A stretch of 64,000 nt of DNA from Rhodosorus marinus CCMP1338 (lineage: Eukaryota; Plantae; Rhodophyta): NCBI GenBank assembly GCA_029953675.1, contig JAMWBK010000001.1, forward strand, positions 2,790,001 to 2,854,000. The letters run 5' to 3'. Position 1 is the stretch's first letter; each line of letters opens with the position of its first letter. Shown here in pieces: positions 791 to 50,300 of this stretch. The position numbers and the translations under genes are program-made. A model generated the notes under the pieces. It searched no databases. It saw nothing but the letters and a program-made list of their open reading frames with translations, and was not told the origin of the DNA.

Positions 791-3112
791 ATGTTGAAGA
801 TATCTACAGTACTCGTTCTCCTATCTGCGGCCTGGGCCCTGCAGAAGCCCGAACAGAGGCATTATGGATGCATCAAGGGAAGCGATGTTTGTATATACCC
901 GACTAATACCGCGGAGTTCCAGTGCGAAACCGTTTTCGATTTTGAGGTCGAATGGCACGTAAAGTCGGGCAAGAAGGCATCGATAGATGACATCAAGGTC
1001 ACCTTCACGGTCCTGGAGACCGGCAAGAAGTACGGCGTTGACCAGTTCTTCCGTATGTCAAAGGGCAAGGAGAGGAGGTGGCCCCTGGAAGTCTACGACA
1101 GCGTGGTGGATGATGAAGCTGAGGTCTATGATTCCATTGCGATCAAGTGGAGCAATGTCTACGTCAGGGAGAAGTTCGGAAAGGGTGATATTAAAGTCAT
1201 GGTGGTTACCCCGAGTGGCAGGACGAGTATCATGTGGAACGTCCACAAGCCGACGAAGAGGATCGCGAAGAATGTTATCCTGCTGGTCGGAGACGGAATG
1301 AACATCAACATGGTATCTGCAGCGCGAATTATTTCCCGTGGTATGGCCGATGGAAAGTACAAGGATCTGATGCATATGCAGAGCCTCCCGTACTTTGGAT
1401 TGATCAACCCCGCCGGAGTCGATTCCATCATCACCGATTCTGCCAACTCTGCATCTACGTTCAACTCCGGTTTCAAATCCTCTGTCAACGCTCTGGGTGT
1501 CTACGTCGATTCCAACACCGATGATGGTGCCAACCTGGACCATCCTAAGGTCGAGCTTCTGGCCGAGCACGTAAGGGACATGGGCATGTCCGTCGGAGTT
1601 GTTAGCACTGCGGAGATTCAGGACGCGACCCCAGCTGCATGCTACGCTCATACCCGTAGACGCGGTGACAAGGCTGAGATCACCCGCCAGGGAATTGAAC
1701 CATGCCCCGGCTGTAGGTATTCCGTGATTCCTGATGTTCTAATCGGAGGTGGAGGAAGGTACTTCCTCCCAAGTTCTTCGTGGGACGGTTCGGACATGTA
1801 CGAGGCGTACGAAAAGGCCGGGTACACGGTGACCTACACGAAGAAGGAGATGGTCAAGGCCGCGAAGAGCAAGAGTACGAAGAAGCTGTTGAACATTTCC
1901 CACTACGGAAACATGAACGTCTGGTTGGACCGAAACGTGTACACTGACAACCTCAAAGTCCAGGAGAATAGTCCCAACCCGGACAAGGTCAAGGACGCCA
2001 GTGGGCAGCCCAACCTGGACGAGATGGTTGACTCTGCCATCAAGGTTCTCAGCAAGAACGAGAACGGATTCTACTTGATGGTCGAAGCCGCTTCCATTGA
2101 CAAATCTGCTCACCCACTCGATACTCACCGACTCCTCGCCGATACCATCGAGTTGGACAACGTTGTCGGGAACCTCAAGAAATGGATCAAGGAAAACGGT
2201 GATGACACCCTCCTGCTCGTAACCGCTGACCACGGACACGGCTGGGATGTCTACGGAACTGTTGACACGCACGTCTGGAAGCAGGTCGCTGAGAAGTGTG
2301 AGGACAATGCTGACATCACCAACCTCTGCAAAGACGTCAAGTGCGGAGCCCAGAGGTTCAAAAACTACTTCGCGAGCGACGTTCAATCACCTGTACGTGA
2401 GCTGGCATTGTCCAGAAGGATTGCTGTAGGCACGTACGCCGGTGCTGGATACCCCGACTACGAGGACAAGGACGGTGACGGATTCCCGGATGAGTGGGAC
2501 GTTAGAACCGTGCTTGCGGCGGGCGCGAACAACTTCCCCGACCACACTGAGAACTTCAGGGTTTCCCCGACCAGCAAGCGCCCAGCCCTCTTCAGCGCGG
2601 AGGTTGGTGCGTACCTGAACAACCCCGAAGACGACCCCGACGGCATCTTTATCAGCGGAAACATCGGTCCGAGGGGCTCAACCGCTGTCCATTCCATGTG
2701 CGATGTTGGGATCTACGGTTACGGCCCTGGAGCTGAACACATTAAGCCGAACATGGACAACACCGCCGTCTTCCACATCATGGCCGAAGCGCTTGGTCTT
2801 GGAACTAACGGCAAGCCGATGGAGAAGGACGAGATGATGCCCAAGGAGATAGAGATGTGCAAGAACACCGCAAAGGAGTGCCACTGCGGCAAGGTGACTG
2901 AGTCCTGCTTCAAAGCTATCAAGCCGTTCAAGGGATTCTGCGAGAAGGTTGAGTGCGAGAAGAAGGCATGCATCTGCACTCCTGGAGCTATGGGATACGT
3001 CGCCGCGGGCACTCCTCTCTGCAAGAAGTCGGAAGAAAAGGTCTATGAAAAGACCGGCCCTATGCAGAGCAAGGGAATCCCGTGCGTCCGTGCTAAAGTG
3101 ATGATGCCTTGA
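791..3112 (+). CDS. phoA: Secreted alkaline phosphatase (PhoA family), intronless, with N-terminal extension and Cys-rich C-terminal tail
   Basis: 773-aa ORF with a hydrophobic signal peptide. It carries KNVILLVGDGM, the nucleophile motif TDSANSA, QDATPA, MVEAASIDKSAH, LVTADH and AVHS, i.e. the full set of PhoA metal-ligand motifs. Confidence 0.93.
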   Translation: MLKISTVLVLLSAAWALQKPEQRHYGCIKGSDVCIYPTNTAEFQCETVFDFEVEWHVKSGKKASIDDIKVTFTVLETGKKYGVDQFFRMSKGKERRWPLEVYDSVVDDEAEVYDSIAIKWSNVYVREKFGKGDIKVMVVTPSGRTSIMWNVHKPTKRIAKNVILLVGDGMNINMVSAARIISRGMADGKYKDLMHMQSLPYFGLINPAGVDSIITDSANSASTFNSGFKSSVNALGVYVDSNTDDGANLDHPKVELLAEHVRDMGMSVGVVSTAEIQDATPAACYAHTRRRGDKAEITRQGIEPCPGCRYSVIPDVLIGGGGRYFLPSSSWDGSDMYEAYEKAGYTVTYTKKEMVKAAKSKSTKKLLNISHYGNMNVWLDRNVYTDNLKVQENSPNPDKVKDASGQPNLDEMVDSAIKVLSKNENGFYLMVEAASIDKSAHPLDTHRLLADTIELDNVVGNLKKWIKENGDDTLLLVTADHGHGWDVYGTVDTHVWKQVAEKCEDNADITNLCKDVKCGAQRFKNYFASDVQSPVRELALSRRIAVGTYAGAGYPDYEDKDGDGFPDEWDVRTVLAAGANNFPDHTENFRVSPTSKRPALFSAEVGAYLNNPEDDPDGIFISGNIGPRGSTAVHSMCDVGIYGYGPGAEHIKPNMDNTAVFHIMAEALGLGTNGKPMEKDEMMPKEIEMCKNTAKECHCGKVTESCFKAIKPFKGFCEKVECEKKACICTPGAMGYVAAGTPLCKKSEEKVYEKTGPMQSKGIPCVRAKVMMP

Positions 3113-13592: not shown

Positions 13593-16409
13593 TTACGAGT
13601 ACATCCTATTTCCGGTTGGGGTTCTCTGAAATTCTCGGACGGGAGAGAAACGGAGTTTATCGTCGGCGACGTCGACGTTGATCGTGTCTCCATTCTTGAA
13701 ATTGCCGCTGAGGATTCCCTTGGCAATTGGAGTTTCCAGCTCCTTTTGCACTGCTCTCTTCAAAGGTCTGGCTCCGTACACAGGGTCGTACCCGACCTTT
13801 CCTATCCAGGCCCGGGCCGCTGGGGTAAGCTCGACCCTGAGCTTCTTCTCCTGAACCCGCTCGTTGAGCTGGTCGACCTGGATGTCAACAATCTCGCGCA
13901 GCTCCTCCGGTCCGAGGGCGTGGAAGATGATGAACTCGTCCAAGCGGTTCAGGAACTCTGGCCTGAACTGCGCCCGCATTCGGTTCATTACCGTCTCCCG
14001 CATCTGCTCGTACTGGGATTCACCGTTGAGCATTCCCAGGATCGCATCGGACCCAATATTCGAGGTGAGTATGATCACAGTGTTCGTAAAGTCGATCACT
14101 CTGCCCTGTGAGTCAGTAATTCGGCCATCATCTAGAACCTGCAGCAGAATGTTGAAAACGTCTGGATGCGCCTTCTCAATCTCGTCGAACAGAATCACCG
14201 AGTAGGGTCGACGCCGAACTGCTTCAGACAGCTGACCCCCCTCGTCGTATCCAACGTAGCCAGGAGGCGCTCCAACGAGCCTGGACACGTTAAACTTCTC
14301 CATGTACTCGCTCATATCCAACCGAATCAAAGCGCTGTCGCTATCGAACATCTGCTCGGTGAGGGCCTTTGCGAGCTCGGTCTTTCCAACACCGGTAGGA
14401 CCTAGAAACGCAAACGACGCAATTGGCCGATTCGGATTGGACAGTCCCGCTCGCGACCTCTGCACTGCTTCGGCTATCGCCTTCACCGCCTCCCGCTGTC
14501 CAACGACGCGCTTCGCCATGGAATCTTCCAGGTGGAGCAGTCTATCCGCTTCCGTCGAAAGCAGCTTCTGGACGGGGATCCTCGTCCAGGCGCTAATCGT
14601 CGCGGCGATGTCGTCCTCAGTCACCTCATTTCGCAGAAGTGGTGCGGCGTCGGAGGTCTCCATGTTGCTTTCCATGGCCTTCAACTTATCCTCCAACTCT
14701 GGAAGTCTACCAAACTTGAGCTCCGCTGCACGATTCAGGTCATACACCTGTTCCGCCTGCTCAGCTTCAGCTTTCACATCCTCTATCTGTGCCCGGAGGT
14801 CCTTCACTCCATCAATACCCCCTCTCTCCAGATCCCATTGGTCCTCAAGTCGGCGCTGATCCTTCTTGAGACCCGACAGCTGCTGTTCGATCTTGGATAG
14901 CCTCGTAGTGGACACACTGTCTTTCTCCTTTTTCAAGCTCAGCTTCTCCATCTCCAACTGGAGTATCTTCCTGTCAAGGCTGTCCAGCGCTGAAGGCTTG
15001 GATGTAATTTCCATCTTCAACTTCGCCATGCTCTCGTCGACCAGGTCAATGGCCTTATCAGGGAGAAACCGGTCGCTTATGTAGCGGTTTGAAAGAGTTG
15101 CCGCTGCCACGAGAGCGGAATCCTGAATCCTTACGCCGTGGTGCATCTCATACCTCTCCTTCAAGCCTCGAAGAATAGAAATCGTATCGGTTACCGACGG
15201 CTGGTCAACCATGACCTGCTGGAATCTCCGTTCGAGGGCCGCATCTTTCTCTATATACTTTCTGTACTCGTCCAGCGTCGTCGCACCAATGCACCGAAGT
15301 TCTCCCCTGGCCAACATGGGCTTCAGCAGGTTGCCAGCATCCATAGCCCCATCCGTTTTCCCGGCGCCAACGACCGTATGTATTTCATCAATAAACAGGA
15401 TAACGCTGCCCTCAGCTTCCGTCACCTCGCTCAGAACGGCCTTCAGGCGTTCTTCAAACTCTCCTCTGTACTTTGCACCAGCCAATAAAGCCCCCATATC
15501 AAGCGCGATAAGCCGGCGGCCTCTCAACGATTCTGGTACGTCGTTGCTCACTATTCGCTGCGCCAAACCCTCCGCAATGGCAGTCTTTCCAACACCTGGC
15601 TCACCGAGAAGGATGGGATTGTTCTTTGTCCTCCGCGAGAGAATCTGGATCGCGCGCCTAATTTCATCGTCTCTTCCAATGACGGGATCCAACCTCTTCT
15701 GCCTTGCGTCGGCGGTCAGATCTCGTCCGTACTGGTTCAGCGCTTCGAAAGTGCCCTCAGGCGTTTTTGTAGTTACATTCTTCCCAGCTCGAATCTCTTC
15801 AATTGCTTTGACCAGCTTATCTTCTGTGATGCCCGTTCCGGAAAACACGTTCCAAAGCCTTCGTTCCCTCGAACAAGCCAAAAGAAGAAGATCCACCGAA
15901 ATAAACGTATCTTTACGCTTGTCCTTCTCCTTCTGCGCATCAGTTAATACGTCACGGAGAGAATTTCCCATAATGTGAGAATCCGGTTCCCGCACTTTGG
16001 GCTGCGACTCCAAATAGGAAACCGCCTTCCGCTCCAAATCCTTCGCCTCAACGCCTACAACTTCCAAAACCCTCGCGACCAAAGGATCTTCAAGCAGCGC
16101 GATCAGCAGCACCTCCGCCTCAATCATCTGCTGCGACGCTTTCCTCGCAACCGTCGAAAGCTTTCCCAGAACATCCCAGGCCTTGTCCGTGTACCTCTCC
16201 GGGTCAAGCAAACCACCACCTGTGTTCGCCTTCATCATCGTAATAACCCGCCTCGGTCCTCCATACACCCCAACCGGCAGTTTCGATCTCCTGAAACCCG
16301 GCCGGTACGCCACAAAACTGCTCGTCCTGGAAGCCACATGCTCAACTCCACTAACACTCAATCGTGGCCCTACTCCCACCACAAACCCTAACCCATCACC
16401 CGTCCCCAT
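13593..16409 (-). CDS. clpB: Chaperone ClpB/Hsp100, plastid-type, intronless
   Basis: Two AAA+ modules (GEPGVGKT; GPTGVGKT), [16 protein letters not shown], coiled-coil M domain, [10 protein letters not shown] and GARPL. Likely start [10 protein letters not shown] at 16409, with a transit-peptide-like extension. Confidence 0.96.
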
Positions 16410-16544
16410 CTTCACTAAAACCAACCCCCCAAAAAAGACAGATCCGGTTCCTCCCACTTCAAGCAAAAACCAAAAACTCCCCTCCCCCGCCCCCTTTCCC
16501 CTCCCCATCCTCCCCAACCTTCCAGACTCTCTGCCTAACGTCCC

Positions 16545-37383: not shown

Positions 37384-38766
37384 CTACGTAGAATAAATCG
37401 TACCCTCCAGTGGGCACGATATGACTCCCTCGCAAGCAACAGGAACATCCATAGGGGGCAGGCCGTGCCTCTCCATCATTGCGTCTGCTCGCTTCCTGGC
37501 CTCGTCTGACCACTGAGAGTTTTTCACTTTCTGCAAAGTAGTCCGTGCAAAACCTGACTGAGCCTGAGAATCCTTGAGGAATCCATCTAGGGCTTTTGGA
37601 AGCAATCTCATGTCGAGATTGCAGTACTCGAAAACCGCTCTCAAGGCGTGCTCCTTGTCCGCAACGATGTCTTCATATCGGACCGCCACCACTTTCATCC
37701 CCTCGTTGCAGAACTCCCTATAAGCTGACAGTATTATAGCGACTGGAAGCAACCCGGCCACGATCGGATATTGGCACAAGTCGACAACGTCCTCTACCGA
37801 AAACCTGCTGTGCGGACCCATCTTGATTTGCGAAAGCTTTCCCGTAATCGTTCCCGCAAAGGCGCTTGTCACTCGCCCTAGTTGAACCAAAGTTAACTGC
37901 CTCAGCAGCTTCTCTAGCGACTCCGCCGTCTTCCTTCGATCCCTCCACATGAATATCTGCTTTGCATTCGGGAAAACGCGGCCGTACAAAGTGACGCACT
38001 CCATATGTGGAGATTTTGGCTTGAAGACGATTGTATCCACCCTCTTCGGTGAAACCACGGGCTTGCACAGCACTCGAATAATATCCCGGGCGAGCACGTC
38101 GATTACTTCCTGCGGAAGGCTTTCCGTCATGAAGCTTAGTGCATCCAGCGCGTAAGGCTCAGAGTAGACGACTGCTGCGTCAGTCGCCTGGAAAGCCTGG
38201 CACAGAAGAGTTGACCCGCATCTGCCTCCGTTCGGTAGAAAGATCAGCCTTGCCGTGGGATCTCCGAGCTCTTCCGCAAACCGATGAAAGTGTTCGATCG
38301 GTACGGTGATCATCCGCTTGGAGTATCTGAACAAATTGACGCTGAAGAACGATCCATACTCCATCCTCCAGAGCTGTTGTCCGGGTTCCGCTTCCACGAA
38401 TACGGCCTCGTTCTTGTTCACATCGTACAGAAAAACGTTATCCTTTCTCAGATAGTCCATCGACACAAACTCTCGGTGCACGGTAACGAAGTTTGCACGA
38501 CCGCTGGCACCCATAAACTCGTCGTACTTGAACCGGTACACAATATCTTGAACCTGCGCTCCAAACCTATACCCAGCCGCAGACTGGCTGGCCCAGAGAT
38601 CGTGCGAGACCCCGGAAAAGAACCATAACATCCTCTGAAACACCCACCAAACCATGCTCATACCGGTCCACAAAACAAAGTACAAGCTCTGAAGAAATAG
38701 ACCAAACCACGACAGCCCGGTCTCATCAAGCCCAATCGAACCCACACTATTGTTCATCAACGACAT
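37384..38766 (-). CDS. Sulfotransferase-like P-loop protein with N-terminal membrane anchor, intronless
   Basis: 460 aa. Contains GGRCGSTLL (5'-PAPS-binding loop type), MWRDRRKTAES (3'-phosphate-binding type), VRYEDIVAD and a hydrophobic N-terminal segment. Confidence 0.75.
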   Translation of the reverse strand: MSLMNNSVGSIGLDETGLSWFGLFLQSLYFVLWTGMSMVWWVFQRMLWFFSGVSHDLWASQSAAGYRFGAQVQDIVYRFKYDEFMGASGRANFVTVHREFVSMDYLRKDNVFLYDVNKNEAVFVEAEPGQQLWRMEYGSFFSVNLFRYSKRMITVPIEHFHRFAEELGDPTARLIFLPNGGRCGSTLLCQAFQATDAAVVYSEPYALDALSFMTESLPQEVIDVLARDIIRVLCKPVVSPKRVDTIVFKPKSPHMECVTLYGRVFPNAKQIFMWRDRRKTAESLEKLLRQLTLVQLGRVTSAFAGTITGKLSQIKMGPHSRFSVEDVVDLCQYPIVAGLLPVAIILSAYREFCNEGMKVVAVRYEDIVADKEHALRAVFEYCNLDMRLLPKALDGFLKDSQAQSGFARTTLQKVKNSQWSDEARKRADAMMERHGLPPMDVPVACEGVISCPLEGTIYST

Positions 38767-40989
38767 AATTTTGTTCCCAAACTACTCAAAACCTATCCCA
38801 ATTCAAAAAAAAAAATTCCCTACTTGGCTATCATCCTCCCCTCCACTCCCCTCCACTCCCCTCCCCTCCCGCGCGAACCACGCCAAAACTCTTAGCAAAC
38901 CCTTTTAATAAATCCCCTAGGTCACCTAAAACACAATATCTCTTTCTCTTCCCTCCCTCTCTCCCTCTATATCTCAAGATCAATACACCCTTCTTTCGGC
39001 TTTTATCCTCTTATTTCAACCTTACCTCCCCTTCCCCCAATTTCCCTCCCCGCCTTCCACCTTCCAAGCCTCCTCAGCATAAAAGCGATTGTTTCCCTTC
39101 TCCTCTCCAGCTCTCTGAACGAGCCCCTCATTCTCACCAATCGCCAATTCGCAACTACATAACGGAGTTACCTCCATTGAAATAATGACTAATATTCAGT
39201 CCAAAACAATATTGTACTCGCCGCTTTATTCAACCCCTGAAAACTCTTCCGTTCGCCAATCCACGCATGTTTTTTAATATTTTTATGAACATAATTGGAA
39301 AAAATACCATGACTACTACTACTACCTTACCCCTCGTCCTAGTGGAACCAAAAAAAACGGACTGAGGAAATTGAGCGGACCGAGAAATTGACCGGATCGA
39401 GTTAACGAAAGAGGTTCGGTGGTTCCCAGCCAACGACTCTTACCCTCGGGTAAGAGTTGTTAGTAAATTGGTTTATGTATGTTTTTATAGGACTAAAGGA
39501 AGCTTTGGGTTTCGTTGGGACGGAGGGGGGGGAGGTAGGGCCTAAAAAGTAGCGATGTGTTTATGTCGGTTTGAAAGAGGGTTTTTCAAATGTCAAAATT
39601 TTTTTTGGCCTAGAGAGAAGGCTCTGTCTGTTCTAAAACTAGAGTATAAGTTTCTATCGGGTCTGAAAAGCAGCATATGCTTTCGTAAATCTTGACATTT
39701 TATAAGGCCAAAAAATGCAATCACGGAAGTATGTCCTTTTATTGAGTTAAATCTGGATTGTAGTTAACTATTTTTGACCGACCAAGTTTGCTGACAGGAA
39801 TGCTCCAAAAAAAAGAGAAAAAGCAGAGCAAGCTTGCCTCTCAAAACTAATGAACTCATTCGTTCTAGTACCCCTTCCCCTCAACACACACAAATCCACA
39901 ACTTTCATAATTATCTAATAAATTTGCATTTACAAGTGCAGTTGTACACCCCAACCAAGCCCCGCTTAAAGTGGTGACATGGGGCATGCCCCATAAATGC
40001 CTAGTGCCCAACAAACGAGATAATAAAATTAGATAGGTATCCTTGATATGGGGCATAGTTCGGGGCATATCGCATTGGGGCGGACGTGCTATGCATATTT
40101 ATTTTATATATTCATGAAAATGATGCCCCTAACAATATGTCGTATTACAACTAAAATACAATATATCGATGCTCATTCGTACGATGAAGAAAAATCGAAT
40201 GCCTCATAATACTGAATTATTCATCTAAAATTCATTATAGTTAGTGACACAGAAAGCCGTCTTTCAACCACATATTCTACCTGATCAACAGCCCCAAAAA
40301 ACCACAATTTTTGAGAAGCCGGCTAAGGATTTGCGGCAAATGGAGGCAAGCTTTAGGGGGCACTATAATCCGAACGATCCGGTTGGTTTAGAAAATTTGA
40401 TATTGATTGCCTCCATGGGGGTGAATGGGGGCATCAAAATCGTTGAAATTTGCTTCATTTTGATAATGAGGCAATGTAGGAGGCATGCCTCATATGCACC
40501 TTACCTCATGTGGATCTGGCCCCGTGCCAGATGAAAATTTTTGTTCCCGGATTCCTAGGAAGAGATAAGTAAATAAATTATCATAAAACGTTTGTTGGCG
40601 TGGCCCAGTGTCAGTTTGTATAAGTTAGTACGTGATAGTACTGAGGGATAATGTTAATACTAATGAGACTTTTTTTGGGGGTTTTCTTGCTATAGATTTT
40701 GAGACATTTTGATTCGGTTGTCTTTTGGGGGGATTGGGGCGGCTGAGTTAGGTGGTGGGCGATTGAGGGTGAAGGGGGGGGGGGGAGCCTTGAGGAGCAC
40801 TTGAAGATAGGTAGTGACTGGAACATGATGCTCCAGGGATGACTATCTGTAGCTTCTGATGTCATGTAGTCAGTACTTGGCTTTTCTACAGTGCTAAAGG
40901 TTACTGGTCGTTTGTTTATTGCTTTAGTTGTGCTGTGAATCTTGTCGTTTGAAACTCTTTTTTTTGGGTGGGGGAGTGGAGCGTTGAGA

Positions 40990-42006
40990 ATGGAGGCCAC
41001 GTTGGAAAATGGGACAGTGAAAAGCCTTGAGGAATCTATGGGAGAGCTTCATGTAGACGAGGTGAAGAAGCTCCCACCACTAGATCCGGCTGAGTTCAAG
41101 CTGAAGTACGAGGTGAAGATCAAGATGTCTACGTTCGGGGAGCACTTGGCTAAGGACCTGTTTCTGATCGGCCACAACGGGCTGAGATGGGAGCTGATGG
41201 ACCTTCAGAGAGTGATGCGCCGGTTTTTCAACGAGAGGTTTCAGGTGGGAAAAACCGATGTCGAGCAGCTCTTCGGCTGGCTCGAAACCTTCTTTGAGCT
41301 TGTGGGAGAGTATTTCGATTACGAGGAGACTTTGCTGTTTCCGTGGATCTCTACGAGAATGTTGCTCAAGTTTGGGGAGCATGGTATCCATCTCCGATTA
41401 CGAATGAAGGCCAGGCTTTTGCTGGTCATGCGAGCATGTGAAGATTACTACTCAAGGTTTTTGTACACGGCACCAGGAGAGTTGCTCCCAGAGTTCTGCG
41501 AGGTCCTGAGGTTTCTGACTGAGGCTCTGTTAGAGTACATTGACTTTGAGGAAAGGGGGGTCATGGCCTTTGTTGCCGCGAAGATTGACGAGAAGGATAC
41601 ACTTGAATACTACGAGCGCATGCAGAAGTTTATCGTGGCGGCGGACTACCCCTTACAGCTTTTCATATTCTTCACAAGACATGTAAAAATGTCTGACTAC
41701 TTTCCCGCTTTCATCCGTGCGTGCGAAGAGAACCCCAAGGAGCACCAAGAGGCGTGGACGCACTTCAACCAGATCAGTACCATTCTGAGTGAATCGACTC
41801 AGAACGTGGCTCTAGACCTGCCGGAGGATCTCCCGCAGATTACAAAGTCAGCTAAGCGATTGAGCAATCCGCTAGCCTTCTTGCGCGGTTCGAAGGACGA
41901 AGAAAGGGAAAAACGGAACGTGAGACGAAGCAGTGGCTCATCGAGCGGCAAAGCCAACGGCGTGAAGGGCTGGAGGCGATCAGCTTCGAAGAAAAGCGCA
42001 GTGTAG
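40990..42006 (+). CDS. Hypothetical protein with hemerythrin-like four-helix pattern
   Basis: Long intronless ORF with GHNGLRWEL...YFDYEETLLFPW...YIDFEE, the spacing of an HHE/hemerythrin-like domain. Confidence 0.6.
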   Translation: MEATLENGTVKSLEESMGELHVDEVKKLPPLDPAEFKLKYEVKIKMSTFGEHLAKDLFLIGHNGLRWELMDLQRVMRRFFNERFQVGKTDVEQLFGWLETFFELVGEYFDYEETLLFPWISTRMLLKFGEHGIHLRLRMKARLLLVMRACEDYYSRFLYTAPGELLPEFCEVLRFLTEALLEYIDFEERGVMAFVAAKIDEKDTLEYYERMQKFIVAADYPLQLFIFFTRHVKMSDYFPAFIRACEENPKEHQEAWTHFNQISTILSESTQNVALDLPEDLPQITKSAKRLSNPLAFLRGSKDEEREKRNVRRSSGSSSGKANGVKGWRRSASKKSAV

Positions 42007-43037: not shown

Positions 43038-43707
43038 ATGGGGGGCGGCGGTAGCGGTGCGGTTTGCATGTACAAGGATCGAGCCGGGATGGCATCGATG
43101 CCGATTGGATTTGTAGCGCCATGGGAAATGAAAGGGTTTGGGAGTGGTGTAGTTGAGGAGCTGGTAGGGAGGGCTCAGCGGCATGCAGCGAATGGTATGG
43201 GCCAGGTGTTTCGTATCCTGAAAGTGAAAGGTGACGGGAGGTGCCTGTTCAGATCGATCGCGAAGAATTTGGCTCTGTTTGGTGGACGAAGTTTACCGGA
43301 GAGGCTAGAAAAGCAAGATGCTGATGCGTTGAGGGAGGCCGCGTTTAAGGTAGGATGTTCAGATCGCGGTGGATTTGCGGACATTCAGCTTTGTTGTAAA
43401 CCTCCTTTGATTATGATTTCTCTAGGTGATTTGCGTCGATAAGAGGGAAGATTTCCGTAAGAAAGGAATCATCGAAGGAGATATCGCCAACTACTGTACC
43501 AGAATGAGAAATCCCGACTTCTACGGCGGTGAACCTGAAATGTTTGTACTAGCGGAGGTTCTTCAGACGCCCATTGGGGTCTATTTACAGATTTCACATA
43601 ACAAGTTCCAGAAACTTGTGATGTACGGAGCCCAGTTCGCAAAGAAAACCAAGGATGAGATTCGTGTCCTGTACAACGGCACCAACCACTACGACGCGCT
43701 GATCTAG
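43038..43707 (+). CDS. OTU-domain deubiquitinase, 2 exons
   Basis: VKGDGRCLFRS (catalytic D/C), YGGEPEMFVL and YNGTNHYDAL (catalytic H). Intron 43350-43425 joins FK/VICVDK in frame. Confidence 0.9.
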
Positions 43708-44641
43708 CGAGCATGTACTTTCGTTTTTTTCTCCTTGGACGGAGGAAGGGGAACCCGTAATTTTTGGATAGTTAGAGAAAGATAGAAGCAGGCTGTGAAT
43801 CACAAAAAAGGGGGGGAAACCATAATCCCCGACGAAGTCTGGAGATCCAGCAGGCGGCCTTCTCAAATCCGCTTACTATACAGGGCCACCACGCGCGTTG
43901 CAGGAGCTCATCCTCGTCAATTTCTTAATCGATTCAAGACCTACGTACTCTGAAATCGACAAGAACAGCACAGTTGATTCCTTCCCAATCAGCTGCTGCC
44001 TGTCATGCAGAGACTTCACGCAGATGTACGAGCCCCTCTTGTCTGCTGAGTCTGGTTACAATTTCTTTTCTCATATGTCAGCGAGTCGTCTTATAGGAAG
44101 CTCCTCCGGCTCTACTGATCTGGAGCCTGAAGAGCTTCGATCCGACTGTCTCAGCTACAAGCAGACGCCAACGATTTAGATTTTAGTACCAGCTACTATA
44201 AAACACTAAGAGTACATTCGCTCTCGAATGGTGGACAGTGGAGTGGGGAAGAAGCACTTGGTATCGGTCTGGGGAAGAGTCGATTATCAATTTATGCGCT
44301 CAACTGGCCAAATAACAACGCCAAAGTGTGCTGTTCAAATTGTTCTCTTGATTTCTAACGCGATCATCTCCTGGAATTTTGAGCTTCAGCTTGTCTGGGT
44401 GTGAACCGGAGCTGAGACAGAGGTTCCGCCGAGACAGCCTCACCGAAAAGCTCAGTACGAGATTGACATAAACGATGTTCACCGTCATCAGACCCTCCTC
44501 ACACCCCGCCGCCCGGCGGTAAGTAACTCGACTCTTCATGGTCGGGAAGAAGGAAAACCTATGCCGTATCAAGTTGTGGGCGGGAGGACAGCATAGCAGT
44601 TCCTTTTCCCGATGATGAATTGGTGAGATCGATTTGGAGCA

Positions 44642-46702
44642 ATGGAAACGAATCTTGGGTTTCTGACGTCACCTGCTGGCGTTTGGTCTAAGAAGAACCG
44701 ACGGAGAAGGACTGTAGATACGGCCAAGACGGTGAGAATTGAACAAGGAACTGTACATGAATCCAGTTTAGAAGATGGAGCGAAATCTATGTATTTGGAC
44801 AGCGCGAGTCGTTCAAAGCCATTTCAGTGCTCTGTCGACGCTCTTCAGCAGTTTTATACACGCGAGAATGCGTATGTGGCCAACGTCGGGGTTTGTTCGA
44901 ATACTCTCGCGAAGGAGCTCGCTTTTGAGATTGATCAGGCCAGATCTTGCATAAGGTAAAACAAAGCCGAACCTGTGGATGAATTCCTTCTGAAGTTCGC
45001 CGGCTTTTTGCCGGCGTTGTTCCATCCAGTTGCCTTAGTCTTCGACAGACCCGCGAAGGATGTGGTTTTTCTGACCGATTTTGTTCCCCATCTGAATCGA
45101 GTCAGGAGTCTGATCAATGGAGATAGTGAGAGCGAGATTGTGCTAACTGGAGGAGCTACGGAGGCGATCAACATTTTAGCGATGTCATGGGGATCATCAT
45201 TTCTTCAAGCCGGCGACGAGATCATTGTATCCACGATGGAACACCACAGCAACATCATTCCTTGGCAGATGATAGCAGAACGAACCGGAGCAAAGCTGAA
45301 GTTCCTGAACATCTCCCCCAAAGGAGACCTCCAAGTCAAAAATCTGGCGAAAACAATCAACCCCAGGACAAAGCTGCTCGCCGTTACCCACGTCTCCCAC
45401 GTCCTTGGATCGGTCAATGATGTCAAGTCACTCGTGGATTACGCAAAGTGCGTCAACGTGAAGGTGAGGAGACTCCTCCAAATGACCCAGAGCTAGACTA
45501 CAAAAATTTTAAGCAACAAGAACGTGAGCGCAGCGACACCTGAGGCTCGTAGTTCTATGCTGTCTGGCGTCTTAACGGAACCAAGATAGAGCTTCCTCGC
45601 CGGGGATAAGATCAGCCCAGCTGATCCACCGGACGGAAGGTCTGGTTCTCCAGCGCCTGAGAAGCTGCTACAAAAAGACACGTTGGGAGAGAAACAGGCC
45701 TAAAACTGTTATTGCTCGTGCATATTCTTTAAGGTCCTTGTCGATGCCTGTCAGAGCCTGCCGTATATGAAAGTCGATGTGAAACAACTTGGATGTGACT
45801 TTCTCGTCGGATCCGGTAACAAACTGTTCGCAGCGGGTGGCGTCGGATTCTTGTACGTCAAGAAGAGCGTGCTAAAGAGTATCCCTGCGTTTCTAACCGG
45901 TAAGTTGATACTAGTTTTCGTTGGTTGTGCCGCGACAGCCGGTCTCGCCGGTCATCAAACGCTGTGGGACTGACGGGAGCTCGAGTTTCGAGCTCTTATG
46001 TTGAGACTACCGCAAACAAGCTGATATCAGCACAGCGCTCTGCGGCCTGGAGCAATGTACCCCTGCTAAGCAAGGACTTTCCGTGCGCTATGACTAAGGC
46101 GGAGAATCAATGTTCTCCAATGTGTCTCTGGAGAAGTCAGCGATCGAGTGCGGTAGGCTGGAGGCGGGATTCCCACCCGCGGCGCAGGTCTTGGCGTTGG
46201 CATCATCTGTCCAGAAGCTCAAAAGTTCGCTGGTTTTCGAGTCGGCTCCAGCAGTCGGCCCGATGAGGAACTCCCCTCAGGTCGATAAGCACAGTGCTCT
46301 TTTGAGCCAAATTTTACTCGAACAACTTTCAGACGTTCCCAGAATCACCGTCTACTCCCCGGGACCAGATTCCAGACCGAGAGTTCCCATTTGCGCGTTC
46401 AACGTTGACGGAACAGATGCGGAGGTCATACAATCCATGCTACGAGAGAAAGGTAAATTCCAAGACCATCTGCGCACCCCCGAGGGACCGAGGAATCTCA
46501 ACGTCCCCATCCTTTTGCGTGAGCAGGAATCTACATTAGCGCCGGTACACATCAAGCGATTCCTCTTCACCGTGAGCTTGGGATCGAGTCGTCTGTGCGC
46601 GTTTCCTTCTCTCACTATAATACTGTAGATGACGTGGCGAGATTCACAGATACACTGAAGCTAGCCGTTGACGAGCTTCCCAGAAGCCGAAGTAGTCCTT
46701 AG
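44642..46702 (+). CDS. SufS/NFS2-like PLP-dependent protein (class V aminotransferase fold) lacking the catalytic Cys; 5 exons; probable plastid transit peptide
   Basis: YLDSAS, TGGATEAIN, STMEHHSNIIPWQ, VTHVSHVLG, VDACQS, GSGNK, LEAGFP and SVRVSFSHYNT. Predicted introns at ~44957-45105, 45464-45733, 45900-46098 and 46453-46526. Confidence 0.88.
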
Positions 46703-47304
46703 CCGTACGTCCTTCGGGGCGATGTGGCAGTGCTCATTGTGTACAATATAGCAAAACTTGGTAACAAGCGAGACAAGTTCCGGAACCTACATTCGTGGCA
46801 GCCGAGGAAGTCAGGTCTTGGAGCTGACGAAGAGTGAGGAGAAGTACTCTTGCTGGTTGCTCATAGCGTCTCTCGAGCGACTCGACAACGGCATGGAAGA
46901 ACAAATCTGCGCTCCCGAGATGAGTTTCTCAAGAGGAGGGACTGTGGTCTTCAGTCGTGTAGTCTCAGCTCCACTGAGACGCCAAACAGCGAAAGCTAGC
47001 TTATCAAGCCTGTGGTAAATTCTGTAGATAATTAGAATACAAAAGCAGAAACGAAGCCGATCTGGGAGAGCCCTGTTCCAGTAGCTGTGGCACCGGGTAC
47101 CAACCAGAGTACCGGTTGCAAGCCATCAGCGTGGCGTTAATCCTGGGCGTGAGCTGGGTTGGTTGAGTACCGTCAACGTCCTAGTCTTGCACTTGATGCT
47201 GTATCGTACGGGGTAACGGGGTTGGGGCGTATTCTGCGGGTTATTTACATTCGTAAACGTCTACGGACCCTTGAATCCTAGTTCATCCACTTGGATCGGT
47301 TGGT

Positions 47305-50300
47305 TTAAGCTTCCGCCACGTCGTCGTCATCATCATCATCGTCATCATCGTCGTCCAGATCGCCAAAGTCGATATCATCGATATCATCATCCGAGTCATC
47401 TTCATCTGTCTCGCCAGCTTGAGGTTCATGACCAGCACCGGTTTCCTTCTCTTCAGCCGCTTCGGGCTGATCTGCAATGGGTTCGGAATCTCCCAATCCA
47501 TTCGCATGAGTCTCGAGCTTTTCGCGGTTTGTCGAATCGCCGTTGAGCTCCTGCTCCAAAATCCCTGTTGCCAGCACGGCCTTGTACACTTGGTACTGGT
47601 CCGAGTCTACAAGTTTCAGCTTCTCCATGAGCTCTGCGTTCTTCTGCTGAGAATCAACCGATTCCTCGAATCCTTCAAACAGATGAGCGTGGGAGGTCGG
47701 ATCGGCCAGGAGGTCTGCCATTCTTACATGTCCGCCCTTTCTTAGATCCGCTTTCCACATCTCGACGATCCTAGTGACCTGATTCACGAGAAAAAAATGG
47801 AGCATGGTCATAGTAAGCTCTCCAGAACAGTTTTTACCGGACGAGGCGTGGAGAGGCTTTTGCTTTGTCTCCTACCTCGGCGGGACAGTAGCTCCGAGCG
47901 AAGAGCGCCGCCTCCGGTATTCTCCCAGACGACAGGAGAACGTTCAAGCACTCATCCACTCGGCCCAGCATGAAGCTACTGAGAAACGCGACGTTCATGA
48001 TGTTCCCTGCCTTGGACTTTTCAGCGACGGTTTGCAGCATTCCCTCATTTCCGGTGGCCATGCCAAGCGACATCAGTCCAGAAAAGTCCTCTCCTTCAAC
48101 CATGCACTCCTCCGCGAGATTCCATCTCCCCGCTTGTGTTGCGTGCTCTCCGAGACTCTTCCACTTCAACGGACTAGGATACTTCCTATTGATCTCAGCG
48201 GCGAGATCTAGCTCACCCAATCCAATTGCCAACTCGCCCCTAACCAAAAACCGGACGCAGAAGGCGCTCTAGAAGCTTAGCGTCCTGGATCAACGGGCTT
48301 TGAAAGATAGCCTATGCAGGGGAGAGACACCTACTTGTAGTCTGGGTCCGTAGCGAGCTGCAAGGCCTGTTCTTTTAGTCCCTGCTTCTCCAAGAACTTT
48401 GCGAGCTTGTTGTGCTCGCTGGGGGGCACTTTCTCCAGGACTTTCGCGGCCTCTGCGTGATCGCTTCTAATTATCGCGGTCTTGTACTCGATCACGCCAA
48501 GATTCAACGTGTACGAGCAGACGTTAACCTCCTTGTCCGCCAGGAAAATCCGGTTGTCCTTGGTCAGGTAGCCCAGTATGAATAGTTGTCCATCCAAGTG
48601 GTGAAGTAGGCTGACTTCCGAACCCACGACATAGTTGAGATGGTTGTTTGAGTTAGTGTAAATGAAGCAGTCCCCGATCCAGCAGCCGCTTGCAACCTTT
48701 TCTGAGTACTCATGCAAAAGCTCAAACGCTTCTTCAACCCCGTCCTGCAAGAAACATCTCAAGTCTGAGGGCGAAGGCATTTCTTGGAGATCACTTGCTT
48801 TTCCTCTCTTCAATTTCTACTTACTGGTCCGACGACACCGCCGCTCCGCTCGACAGCTTCTTCGAAAGCCTCGCGACTAAATTTCAGTACAAAGAACGAC
48901 TGCTCTGTCGCCACGCACAGCAGTTCCGAGTCCGACCAGTAGATCTTCGTCGGGACGACGTCAATCCTCCGTATCAATTGCAGCGTTTCCCAGTCAAAGA
49001 AGCACACAAAGTCGCTCGACCGCACCGAAAGCAGATTTCCACCGAAAATTCCGTCCGCCATGAAGTCCGTCTGCATGGCAGTCCTCTCCTTGAACTTATT
49101 CGAGAAGACCCGAATGTCTGTCGTGCCGCGACGGGTTGCGTATTCACCTGCTCCGTTATCCCATACAACCTACAATTGCGCGCGAAGAGTTCAGTATCCT
49201 GTTCCAAGTGACAAGTATTCAATCGAATGTGGACTCGAAGTCGCACCTCGTCTGCTTGCCCAAAACTCTTGTTCCTCCACGCAAGCGCAGTGTAGATAAT
49301 GTATTCTCCATCGCCGCAGACGGACACGAATCGACCGTTAGGGCTGTGGGAGATGAACTGCGGTGAATTCTCGGTGTTACCGAGCTCTTTACCGACTAGC
49401 GGAAGGCGGTCACCATCCCCGTGTGACGATGTATCGATACTGCGTACGTTCACAGTGCTCACTTCATTCTGCTTGATGTAGATTACCTTTCCGGAGCTGT
49501 CCATGGATACGAGGGGAGTATCCTTACCGAACCTTACCACAATCGTACCTAGTCGATGTAGAGAGATTGCGGGTGCGAGCACGTTCACAACCAGCTGGAG
49601 CAAGCGCGGGATTACAGGATTTGCTCTTACCGATATCGTATCCGATGGCTATTCTATTCAATCCCTTGATGTGAGCAGCGGCCCAGCACCTCTCCATGTT
49701 AAACTGGAGCGTTGCTTCGTTTCTGTAGGTATTAGTATTCCAGAGGACCACCGACCCATCCTCCGATCCGCTGAGGATGAGCGGCCGATCGTGAATGAAC
49801 GAGACGCAGGAAACATTGTGCTGATGGTACTCCAAAGTCTGTACGCAATTTCGCGTCTGATAATCCCACAGCTTCACCACCTGGTCATCACCACCGGAGA
49901 CCAAATACGGCTTGTCCGCTCCGACGTAGTAGTCGATGCAGTTCACTCCCTTCTCGTGACCTTCCAGGGTCAAATTCGGAATCGGTGATGATATGCTCCA
50001 AACCTAAAATCGGAGAGGTCGCTTTCAGGCTTCCGAATCCTAGGTCTGGAAGCGGGAGATAAGGTCATCGTACCTTGATTGTGTGGTCTAGTGAGGCGGA
50101 GGCGAAGGTATTTGGATCTTTTGGATTGAAAAGGACCTGCATGACATAGTGACCATGGCCTTCGAATATCATGGTATTAGCCCATCCCTTCTCCCAATCC
50201 CAGAGCTTGATGAGCATATCGTCGGATGCAGTGACGACGAGGGGCAGCGTGGGGTGAACGCTAACGCTTCGAATGTAGTCCATATGCGCTTCAAAAGCCT

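Follow-up and report, generated by a model that had tools for sequence, protein, structure and literature searches.

The stretch analysed here comprises 64,000 nucleotides of the genome of Rhodosorus marinus CCMP1338, a member of the red-algal class Stylonematophyceae (contig JAMWBK010000001.1, positions 2,790,001 to 2,854,000 of the forward strand; hereafter the window), which is described in PMC10250338. Between positions 44642 and 46702 its plus strand carries a nuclear gene of five exons whose product of 455 residues belongs to the SufS/NFS2 cysteine desulfurases, but has a glutamine at the position of the persulfide-forming cysteine, as the original prediction for this locus had proposed. 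The gene and its product are referred to below as the Gln gene and the Gln protein. The evidence set out here makes it very probable that the Gln protein is a maintained protein which is no longer a desulfurase.

The coding sequence of 1368 nt is divided by four introns of 150, 270, 199 and 74 nt, all of them with GT-AG borders. Exon 1 (44642-44955, codons 1-105, ending in phase 2) encodes an N-terminal leader of 45 residues (44642-44776), followed by the first part of the class-V aminotransferase fold. Exon 2 (45106-45463) reaches codon 224 and includes the motifs GATEAIN, EHH and HVSHVLG, exon 3 (45734-45899) contains DACQ and SGNK, and exon 4 (46099-46452) covers a diverged β-hairpin region, RLEAGFPP, a 13-residue insertion and the helix α16. 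The last exon (46527-46702, 176 nt including the stop codon), which reads GIYISAGTHQAIPLH, provides the active-site loop and Arg422. The translation matches, at every residue, the R. marinus protein KAJ8908967.1, which is deposited at NCBI as 'hypothetical protein NDN08_005667' and encoded on a contig of 3.8 Mb. Orthologous transcripts are found in the JGI datasets 3300016967 (L001 and L002) and 3300017118 (L003 and L004), together with the MMETSP protein P0001, and the spliced transcripts of these two further Rhodosorus lineages align to the window precisely at the modelled exon borders, which bears out the earlier claim of an intact spliced frame. The start codon at 44642 is firm, since an in-frame stop lies five codons upstream of it in the window and in all four transcripts. 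An additional upstream exon (ATG at 44475, GT donor at 44519) was considered and rejected, as it has no frame-compatible acceptor and the transcripts carry the in-frame stop before the ATG at 44642.

It is scarcely credible that the glutamine is an artefact of annotation or splicing and that the real transcript uses a cysteine-bearing exon. The four transcripts of the two other lineages carry the same Gln exon with the same borders and read CAA, the gene model equals the NCBI protein, and a tblastn search of the 64-kb window with the C-termini of canonical SufS proteins returned only 46526-46678 and no second SufS-like exon. No evidence in favour of an artefact was found. Intron-retaining forms exist in the MMETSP-type strain, where L003 and L004 keep intron 3 (45900-46098 in the window) and about 36 extra nucleotides at the junction of exons 1 and 2 (intron 44956-45105), and L003 additionally keeps intron 4 (46453-46526). 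Each of these retentions and extra stretches leads to a premature stop; the fully spliced form, P0001, is also present.

The 45-residue leader is basic and hydroxylated, has a phenylalanine at position 7 and is modelled with a low predicted local distance difference test score (pLDDT), and it resembles the N-termini of P0003 and P0004, two divergent red-algal SufS paralogues. A phenylalanine close to the N-terminus is typical of red-algal transit peptides, and the leader suggests that the Gln protein is probably targeted to the plastid.

The Gln protein is a SufS/NFS2 descendant with a SufS-type fold. The Pfam family PF00266 (Aminotran_5) matches residues 50-437 with an E-value of 8.6e-95, and in a sequence search of the PDB the best solved relatives are AtNFS2 (4Q75/4Q76, 1.8e-82; 37-38% identity), followed by the Synechocystis and E. 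coli SufS, with the SufS/NFS2 chains scoring between 1e-67 and 1e-82. The AlphaFold2 model has a mean pLDDT of 82.5 and a predicted template modelling score of 0.85, and its top Foldseek match is again 4Q75 with template modelling (TM) scores of 0.81/0.88, while the E. coli SufS is also among the best matches at TM scores of 0.8-0.9. The architecture is of type II, as the active-site loop aligns without gaps and without the type I insertion. The fold, the length, the short type II loop and the presence of an N-terminal leader are common to the Gln protein and the plastid and cyanobacterial type of SufS represented by AtNFS2 and the E. coli enzyme.

Residues were mapped onto the numbering of E. 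coli SufS by HMMER alignment, and every residue examined that serves sulfur transfer is lost. First, the active-site loop SAGTHQAIPL (46538-46567) replaces the class II loop motif R(T/A/V/S)GHHCA (PMC8300815), and Gln407 (codon CAA, 46553-46555) aligns with the persulfide-forming cysteine, C364 in E. coli SufS and C384 in AtNFS2 (4Q75). The canonical enzyme persulfide cannot form. In the same region R359 has become Ser402 and H362 has become Thr405. Next, the α3-α4 loop, N(A/S)NVHRG in canonical sequences, is rewritten in the alignments as NAYVANVGVC (residues 76-85, 44867-44896): His55 and Arg56 of the E. coli protein are gone, a valine occupies the Arg56 column, and extra residues including Cys85 are present. 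Finally, helix α16 reads DAEVIQSM (residues 386-393, 46416-46439) in place of the motif HXXDXX-zeta-Phi, with the substitutions H343D and D346V (Ile in JGI). Arg56 and Arg359 are needed for both C-S cleavage and persulfide transfer, and variants of either show major defects in persulfide transfer (transpersulfuration) (PMC11507941), whereas D346 is the sole strictly conserved residue of α16 and its exchange for alanine abolishes SufE binding (PMC11408855). With Gln407 in the loop, no Arg56 or Arg359 and no α16 His or Asp for SufE docking, the sequence indicates that the Gln protein is no longer part of the sulfur relay. A role in the SUF relay through SufE is therefore unlikely. The altered NVHRG motif and the SGNK in place of SxHK that the original prediction had pointed out are both present.

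Several residues around the cofactor, pyridoxal 5′-phosphate (PLP), are retained. As in AtNFS2 and E. coli SufS, the Gln protein has the EHH motif (residues 150-152, 45239-45247; His151 and His152 correspond to H123 and H124), DACQ (residues 228-231, 45743-45754; Asp228 and Gln231 correspond to D200 and Q203), the serine of SGHK (Ser251, corresponding to S223, in SGNK at 45812-45823, where Asn253 replaces His225), the Schiff-base lysine (Lys254, AAA, 45821-45823; K226) and an arginine corresponding to R379 (Arg422 in SVRVSF, 46598-46600). H123 is the acid-base histidine and R379 binds the substrate carboxylate (PMC8918507). From the retention of His151, Asp228, Gln231, Ser251 and Lys254 the protein is predicted to keep PLP binding, and Arg422 likewise suggests that an α-amino acid can still be bound. 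The original prediction had listed the lysine, EHH, DACQ and the arginine as retained; this holds for the window, and the lysine is also kept in the MMETSP strain, but in the JGI 3300016967 lineage it is an asparagine. Other deviations in the pocket are His203 in HVSHVLG (45398-45400), which replaces Asn175, and Phe304 in RLEAGFPP (46170-46172), which replaces Thr278. In addition, a 13-residue insertion in exon 4 (SSLVFESAPAVGP, 46224-46262) is present only in the Gln group; the confidence of its structure prediction is low, and it counts among the most variable stretches between the orthologues.

The extent of divergence was measured over 102 alignment columns with a conservation of at least 95% among 67 canonical SufS sequences. 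Of these columns, 60 are retained in the Gln protein, 85 in P0003 and 100 in the canonical SufS of Rhodosorus. All six sulfur-transfer residues (C364, R56, H55, R359, H343 and D346) are lost, an outcome for which the chance at a background retention of 59% would be 0.41^6, or about 0.005, with the reservation that this residue set was picked post hoc.

Two cysteines of the Gln protein, Cys85 in the inserted GVC and Cys297 before RLEAGFP, replace a family-invariant glycine and proline, respectively, and are identical in all three Rhodosorus lineages. One of them could be a relocated nucleophile in a protein that still mobilises sulfur, and the α3-α4 loop of the neighbouring subunit is in fact known to reach the SufS active site (PMC11408855); the corresponding loop of P0003 and P0004 likewise has a cysteine (GAC). 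However, these two proteins hold the canonical cysteine alongside the loop cysteine, and with Arg56, Arg359 and the SufE-docking motif gone from the Gln protein such a shift of the nucleophile appears very improbable.

The substitution is confined to a single group of sequences. Searches over 5.8 billion proteins yielded a set of more than 230 SufS homologues, and every listed homologue outside the Rhodosorus group has a cysteine at the catalytic position, so the glutamine is not a matter of chance. A motif pattern found the cysteine in 225 homologues and missed nine sequences, eight of which are full-length and have the cysteine by eye, the remaining one being a short fragment of the Gln group that ends before the loop. 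Glutamine is found only in five Rhodosorus sequences, which are all those of the group that cover the loop, and it is encoded by CAA in each of the four orthologous DNA sequences. Sequence identity falls from 92% and 87% in the orthologues to 41% at the next match, and among the matches found the Gln gene does not extend beyond the genus Rhodosorus. Desulfurase homologues that are inactive or have been repurposed are already known, but the literature searched, which included an algal SUF survey (PMC8003979), contained no description of a naturally Cys-less type II (SufS) paralogue.

The Gln gene evolves under purifying selection. The rates of nonsynonymous and synonymous substitution (dN and dS) were compared among the orthologues, with codon-model likelihoods from IQ-TREE equal to those of our own implementation of GY94. 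For all pairs except L001 and L002, dS is 0.19-0.28 and dN/dS (ω) is 0.16-0.37, and on the four-taxon tree ω is 0.311, with ω=1 rejected (2ΔlnL=63.8, p=1.4e-15). At a dS of 0.2-0.3, the 4 x 455 codons of the reading frames are free of stops and frameshifts. Between the window and JGI 3300016967, dN of the Gln gene is 0.072, dS 0.21-0.24 and ω 0.30-0.35, whereas the canonical SufS of the same two organisms (L010 and L008) has a dN of 0.019-0.022, a dS of 0.23-0.31 and an ω of 0.06-0.10. The gene is thus maintained, as the original prediction had suggested, with the qualification that the constraint is 3-5 times weaker than in canonical SufS. The losses of the residues for the ancestral reaction (Cys, Arg56 and Arg359), in combination with purifying selection and spliced transcripts, are among the marks by which a pseudoenzyme is recognised.

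Constraint differs between the lineages. Both JGI 3300016967 contigs, L001 and L002, have an asparagine codon (AAT; SGNN) where the window has AAA for the PLP lysine. A two-ratio model with ω of 0.19 in the two lysine-keeping lineages and 0.49 in the lysine-less one is better than a single ratio (p=0.0016); the foreground branch spans the time both before and after the K254N substitution. L001 and L002 are identical up to codon 356 and then show 22 codon differences, all in the 3′ third, of which 14 are nonsynonymous and 8 synonymous, which is compatible with neutrality (binomial p=0.16). Since the 5′ two-thirds are common to both contigs, they do not provide independent evidence for K254N; alleles, a very recent duplicate or a chimeric assembly may account for the pair. 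We read K254N as a sign of relaxing constraint in this lineage. A stronger claim, that the substitution proves the lysine to be dispensable, was rejected, as the lineage shows relaxed constraint, the variants are compatible with neutrality and the contigs are not independent.

These data also bear on whether the Gln gene is simply a functionless, slowly decaying duplicate that is being lost, at least in the lysine-less lineage. The ω several times that of canonical SufS from the same two organisms, the value of 0.49 and the neutrality-compatible differences in the lysine-less lineage, the intron-retaining transcripts of one strain and the restriction of the gene to one genus would all fit such a decay. 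On the other hand, ω=1 is rejected on the whole tree and also for the lysine-less foreground (p=0.0008), the reading frames are uninterrupted at the given divergence, the splice sites are conserved and used, and 33 of the 42 near-invariant family positions replaced in the Gln protein are identical in all three Rhodosorus lineages. Decay is accordingly improbable overall, and for the lineage of the window it is close to refuted. Neither of the two outcomes that would have overturned the original prediction is seen: the transcripts use the Gln exon, and the orthologues are under purifying selection.

The canonical SufS that the original prediction had advised looking for is present elsewhere in the R. 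marinus genome (NDN08_003327, KAJ8906843.1, P0280; locus L010 on JAMWBK010000003.1), and another is found in the JGI 3300016967 organism (L008). The Gln gene shares with the canonical R. marinus gene its genome, its nuclear, intron-bearing character and a leader of the red-algal type, but the two lie on separate contigs and their products are only 37% identical. In both genes one and the same Gly codon is split by the last intron, with identical phase, and this shared position and phase favours a nuclear duplication over a separate acquisition. A recent, genus-specific duplication, with the Gln group as sister to the canonical Rhodosorus SufS, was rejected by the approximately unbiased (AU) test (p=0.002). 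The canonical protein (P0280, L010 4001-5606) itself has FEPGTP, with an Ala to Pro exchange, and GNHC, with an asparagine for His362 of E. coli; both deviations are near the active site at positions otherwise at least 95% conserved, and the related Bangiopsis has the consensus residue at both.

The stem branch of the Gln group is about 5 substitutions per site long, and because of this length a firm placement was not reached. The group clusters with P0003 and P0004 in one tree (Shimodaira-Hasegawa-like approximate likelihood-ratio support of 82) and floats in a better-sampled one, and in the AU test neither a clade with P0003 and P0004 (p=0.26) nor a position inside the red algae (p=0.19) is rejected. 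P0003 and P0004 are the best matches of the Gln protein outside Rhodosorus (41% and 40% identity), and several features are common to them and the Gln group: K(L/M)FA after the PLP lysine, EAG(F/A)PP with loss of Thr278, extra residues in the α3-α4 loop including a cysteine, and a leader of the form F-V/L-(T)-S-P-A ... RRRR. The two proteins differ from the Gln group in keeping the Cys, HK, HR, Arg359 and HxxD and in passing the SufS model TIGR01979 (502 bits), and the P0003 gene, unlike the Gln gene, is intronless. With such long branches, orthology between the Gln group and P0003 and P0004 is unproven. A contig of the Logan assembly of SRR23274491 (contig 2252, 26,392 bp; L005/L006) carries both P0284, a canonical-type SufS (1601-3043, minus strand), and P0003 (16528-17874, plus strand), separated by 13.5 kb, divergently oriented and each without introns. 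Two SufS paralogues are thus present in at least one other red alga.

The neighbouring genes are ordinary eukaryotic ones, and no SUF-pathway gene or functional link was found among them. On the plus strand, these include an OTU cysteine protease (43426-43707), a weak match to a hemerythrin-like domain (40942-42006) and an alkaline phosphatase (791-3112), and on the minus strand a sulfotransferase-like domain (37384-38766) and a ClpB-type AAA+ chaperone (13593-16517); further neighbours of the Gln gene are an acidic protein and NOP9. The 3′ untranslated region of L001 aligns to the window as far as 47389 (46703-47389) and enters a convergent, Asp-rich reading frame of 168 residues on the minus strand (47305-47811), which has no Pfam match. 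The overlap represents either overlapping convergent transcripts or an assembly merger.

Among the explanations of what the Gln protein does, we favour, with a probability of roughly 0.4, the catalysis of a new PLP-dependent reaction. Such a reaction would need no cysteine from the enzyme and would take place in a pocket that lacks two arginines and two histidines of the canonical one. Candidate chemistries would be a β-elimination or β-replacement in which the substrate, of the selenocysteine, cysteine sulfinate or cystine type, offers a good leaving group, or else a transamination, and the lineage without Lys254 would be in the course of losing the function. Precedents exist for PLP chemistry of this kind on a desulfurase scaffold. 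The C364A variant of SufS serves as a selenocysteine lyase (PMC10778597), although it differs from the wild type by one engineered substitution compared to 42 of the 102 conserved positions changed in the Gln protein. The cyst(e)ine C-S lyase of Synechocystis, C-DES, is a NifS-like PLP protein of the NifS/SufS fold that has no active-site cysteine (PMC8300815) and β-eliminates cystine. No C-DES chain is found among the 60 best PDB sequence matches of the Gln protein (the weakest with an E-value of 4.6e-16), and as descent from C-DES is not indicated, any lyase activity of the Gln protein would be convergent. The PDB matches do include UstD and FGM3, which are desulfurase-like proteins with other chemistry.

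A number of observations weigh against a retained catalytic activity. Three of the contacts to PLP or the substrate are altered (N175H, H225N and T278F), and 42 of the 102 near-invariant positions are replaced. The PLP core has 8 of its 11 residues left, which is indistinguishable from the 59% background and therefore alone is no proof that PLP is required. With TIGR01979, the Gln protein scores 346.3 bits and its orthologue P0002 328.3 bits, below the cut-off of 475.1, while the canonical Rhodosorus SufS scores 581.6, P0284 546.5 and P0003 501.7. Likewise, the constraint on the gene is several times weaker than on canonical SufS, and the rejection of ω=1 for the lysine-less foreground points to residual purifying selection in that lineage, which could reflect a function independent of the Schiff-base lysine.

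A second explanation, which we consider possible but doubtful, is a non-catalytic pseudoenzyme that keeps the SufS fold and the dimer interface and acts by binding. In one variant, the Gln protein would form a heterodimer with canonical SufS, in which its Arg56-less loop lines the active site of the partner and damps persulfide transfer; in another, it would be a sensor that binds cysteine or PLP. Every residue tied to catalytic sulfur transfer is indeed lost, and the lysine has changed to asparagine in a lineage where the reading frame stays intact and transcribed with ω below 1. The active site and the SufE interface of a SufS monomer are built in part from the R56 loop of its neighbour (PMC11408855), and the canonical Rhodosorus SufS, the would-be partner, deviates from the family at the two positions near its active site described above. 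The C364A variant of E. coli SufS traps a Cys-aldimine (PDB 6O11, among the Foldseek matches), so that cysteine could be bound but not turned over by a protein lacking the catalytic Cys. A precedent is the IscS of A. fulgidus, an inactive paralogue with an aspartate for the PLP lysine (PMC8918507), which, like the Gln protein, is a retained desulfurase homologue without a strictly conserved catalytic residue and has been proposed to be a scaffold (PMC8918507); unlike the Gln protein, it is an archaeal type I protein that keeps the cysteine and has the lysine replaced (Asp199). Against a pseudoenzyme, the loss of Lys254 coincides with relaxed constraint and is followed by changes compatible with neutrality (14 versus 8, p=0.16), it is uncertain whether a heterodimer interface would have been preserved along a stem branch of about 5 substitutions per site, and a decoy for SufE is unlikely as the SufE-docking residues are lost. 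Since the loss of the lysine coincides with relaxed constraint, a Cys-independent enzyme is preferred over a pseudoenzyme. The more specific proposal that the Gln protein is a dominant-type regulator of plastid iron-sulfur cluster assembly, gating the hand-over of persulfide from SufS to SufE as a heterodimer, is rather unlikely; the gating might respond to bound cysteine or PLP, and the type II (SUF) system would thereby have its first pseudo-desulfurase.

SufS and NFS2 are the entry point of sulfur to the plastid and bacterial SUF iron-sulfur cluster assembly. The practical reach of the present finding is limited, as it concerns a single genus and a protein annotated merely as hypothetical. 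Nevertheless, the Gln protein represents a natural experiment on the SufS scaffold, in which the scaffold has been uncoupled from sulfur transfer with its PLP core kept, and the result would be either a regulatory pseudoenzyme of the SUF system or a red-algal plastid enzyme with a new PLP reaction that is independent of the Cys.

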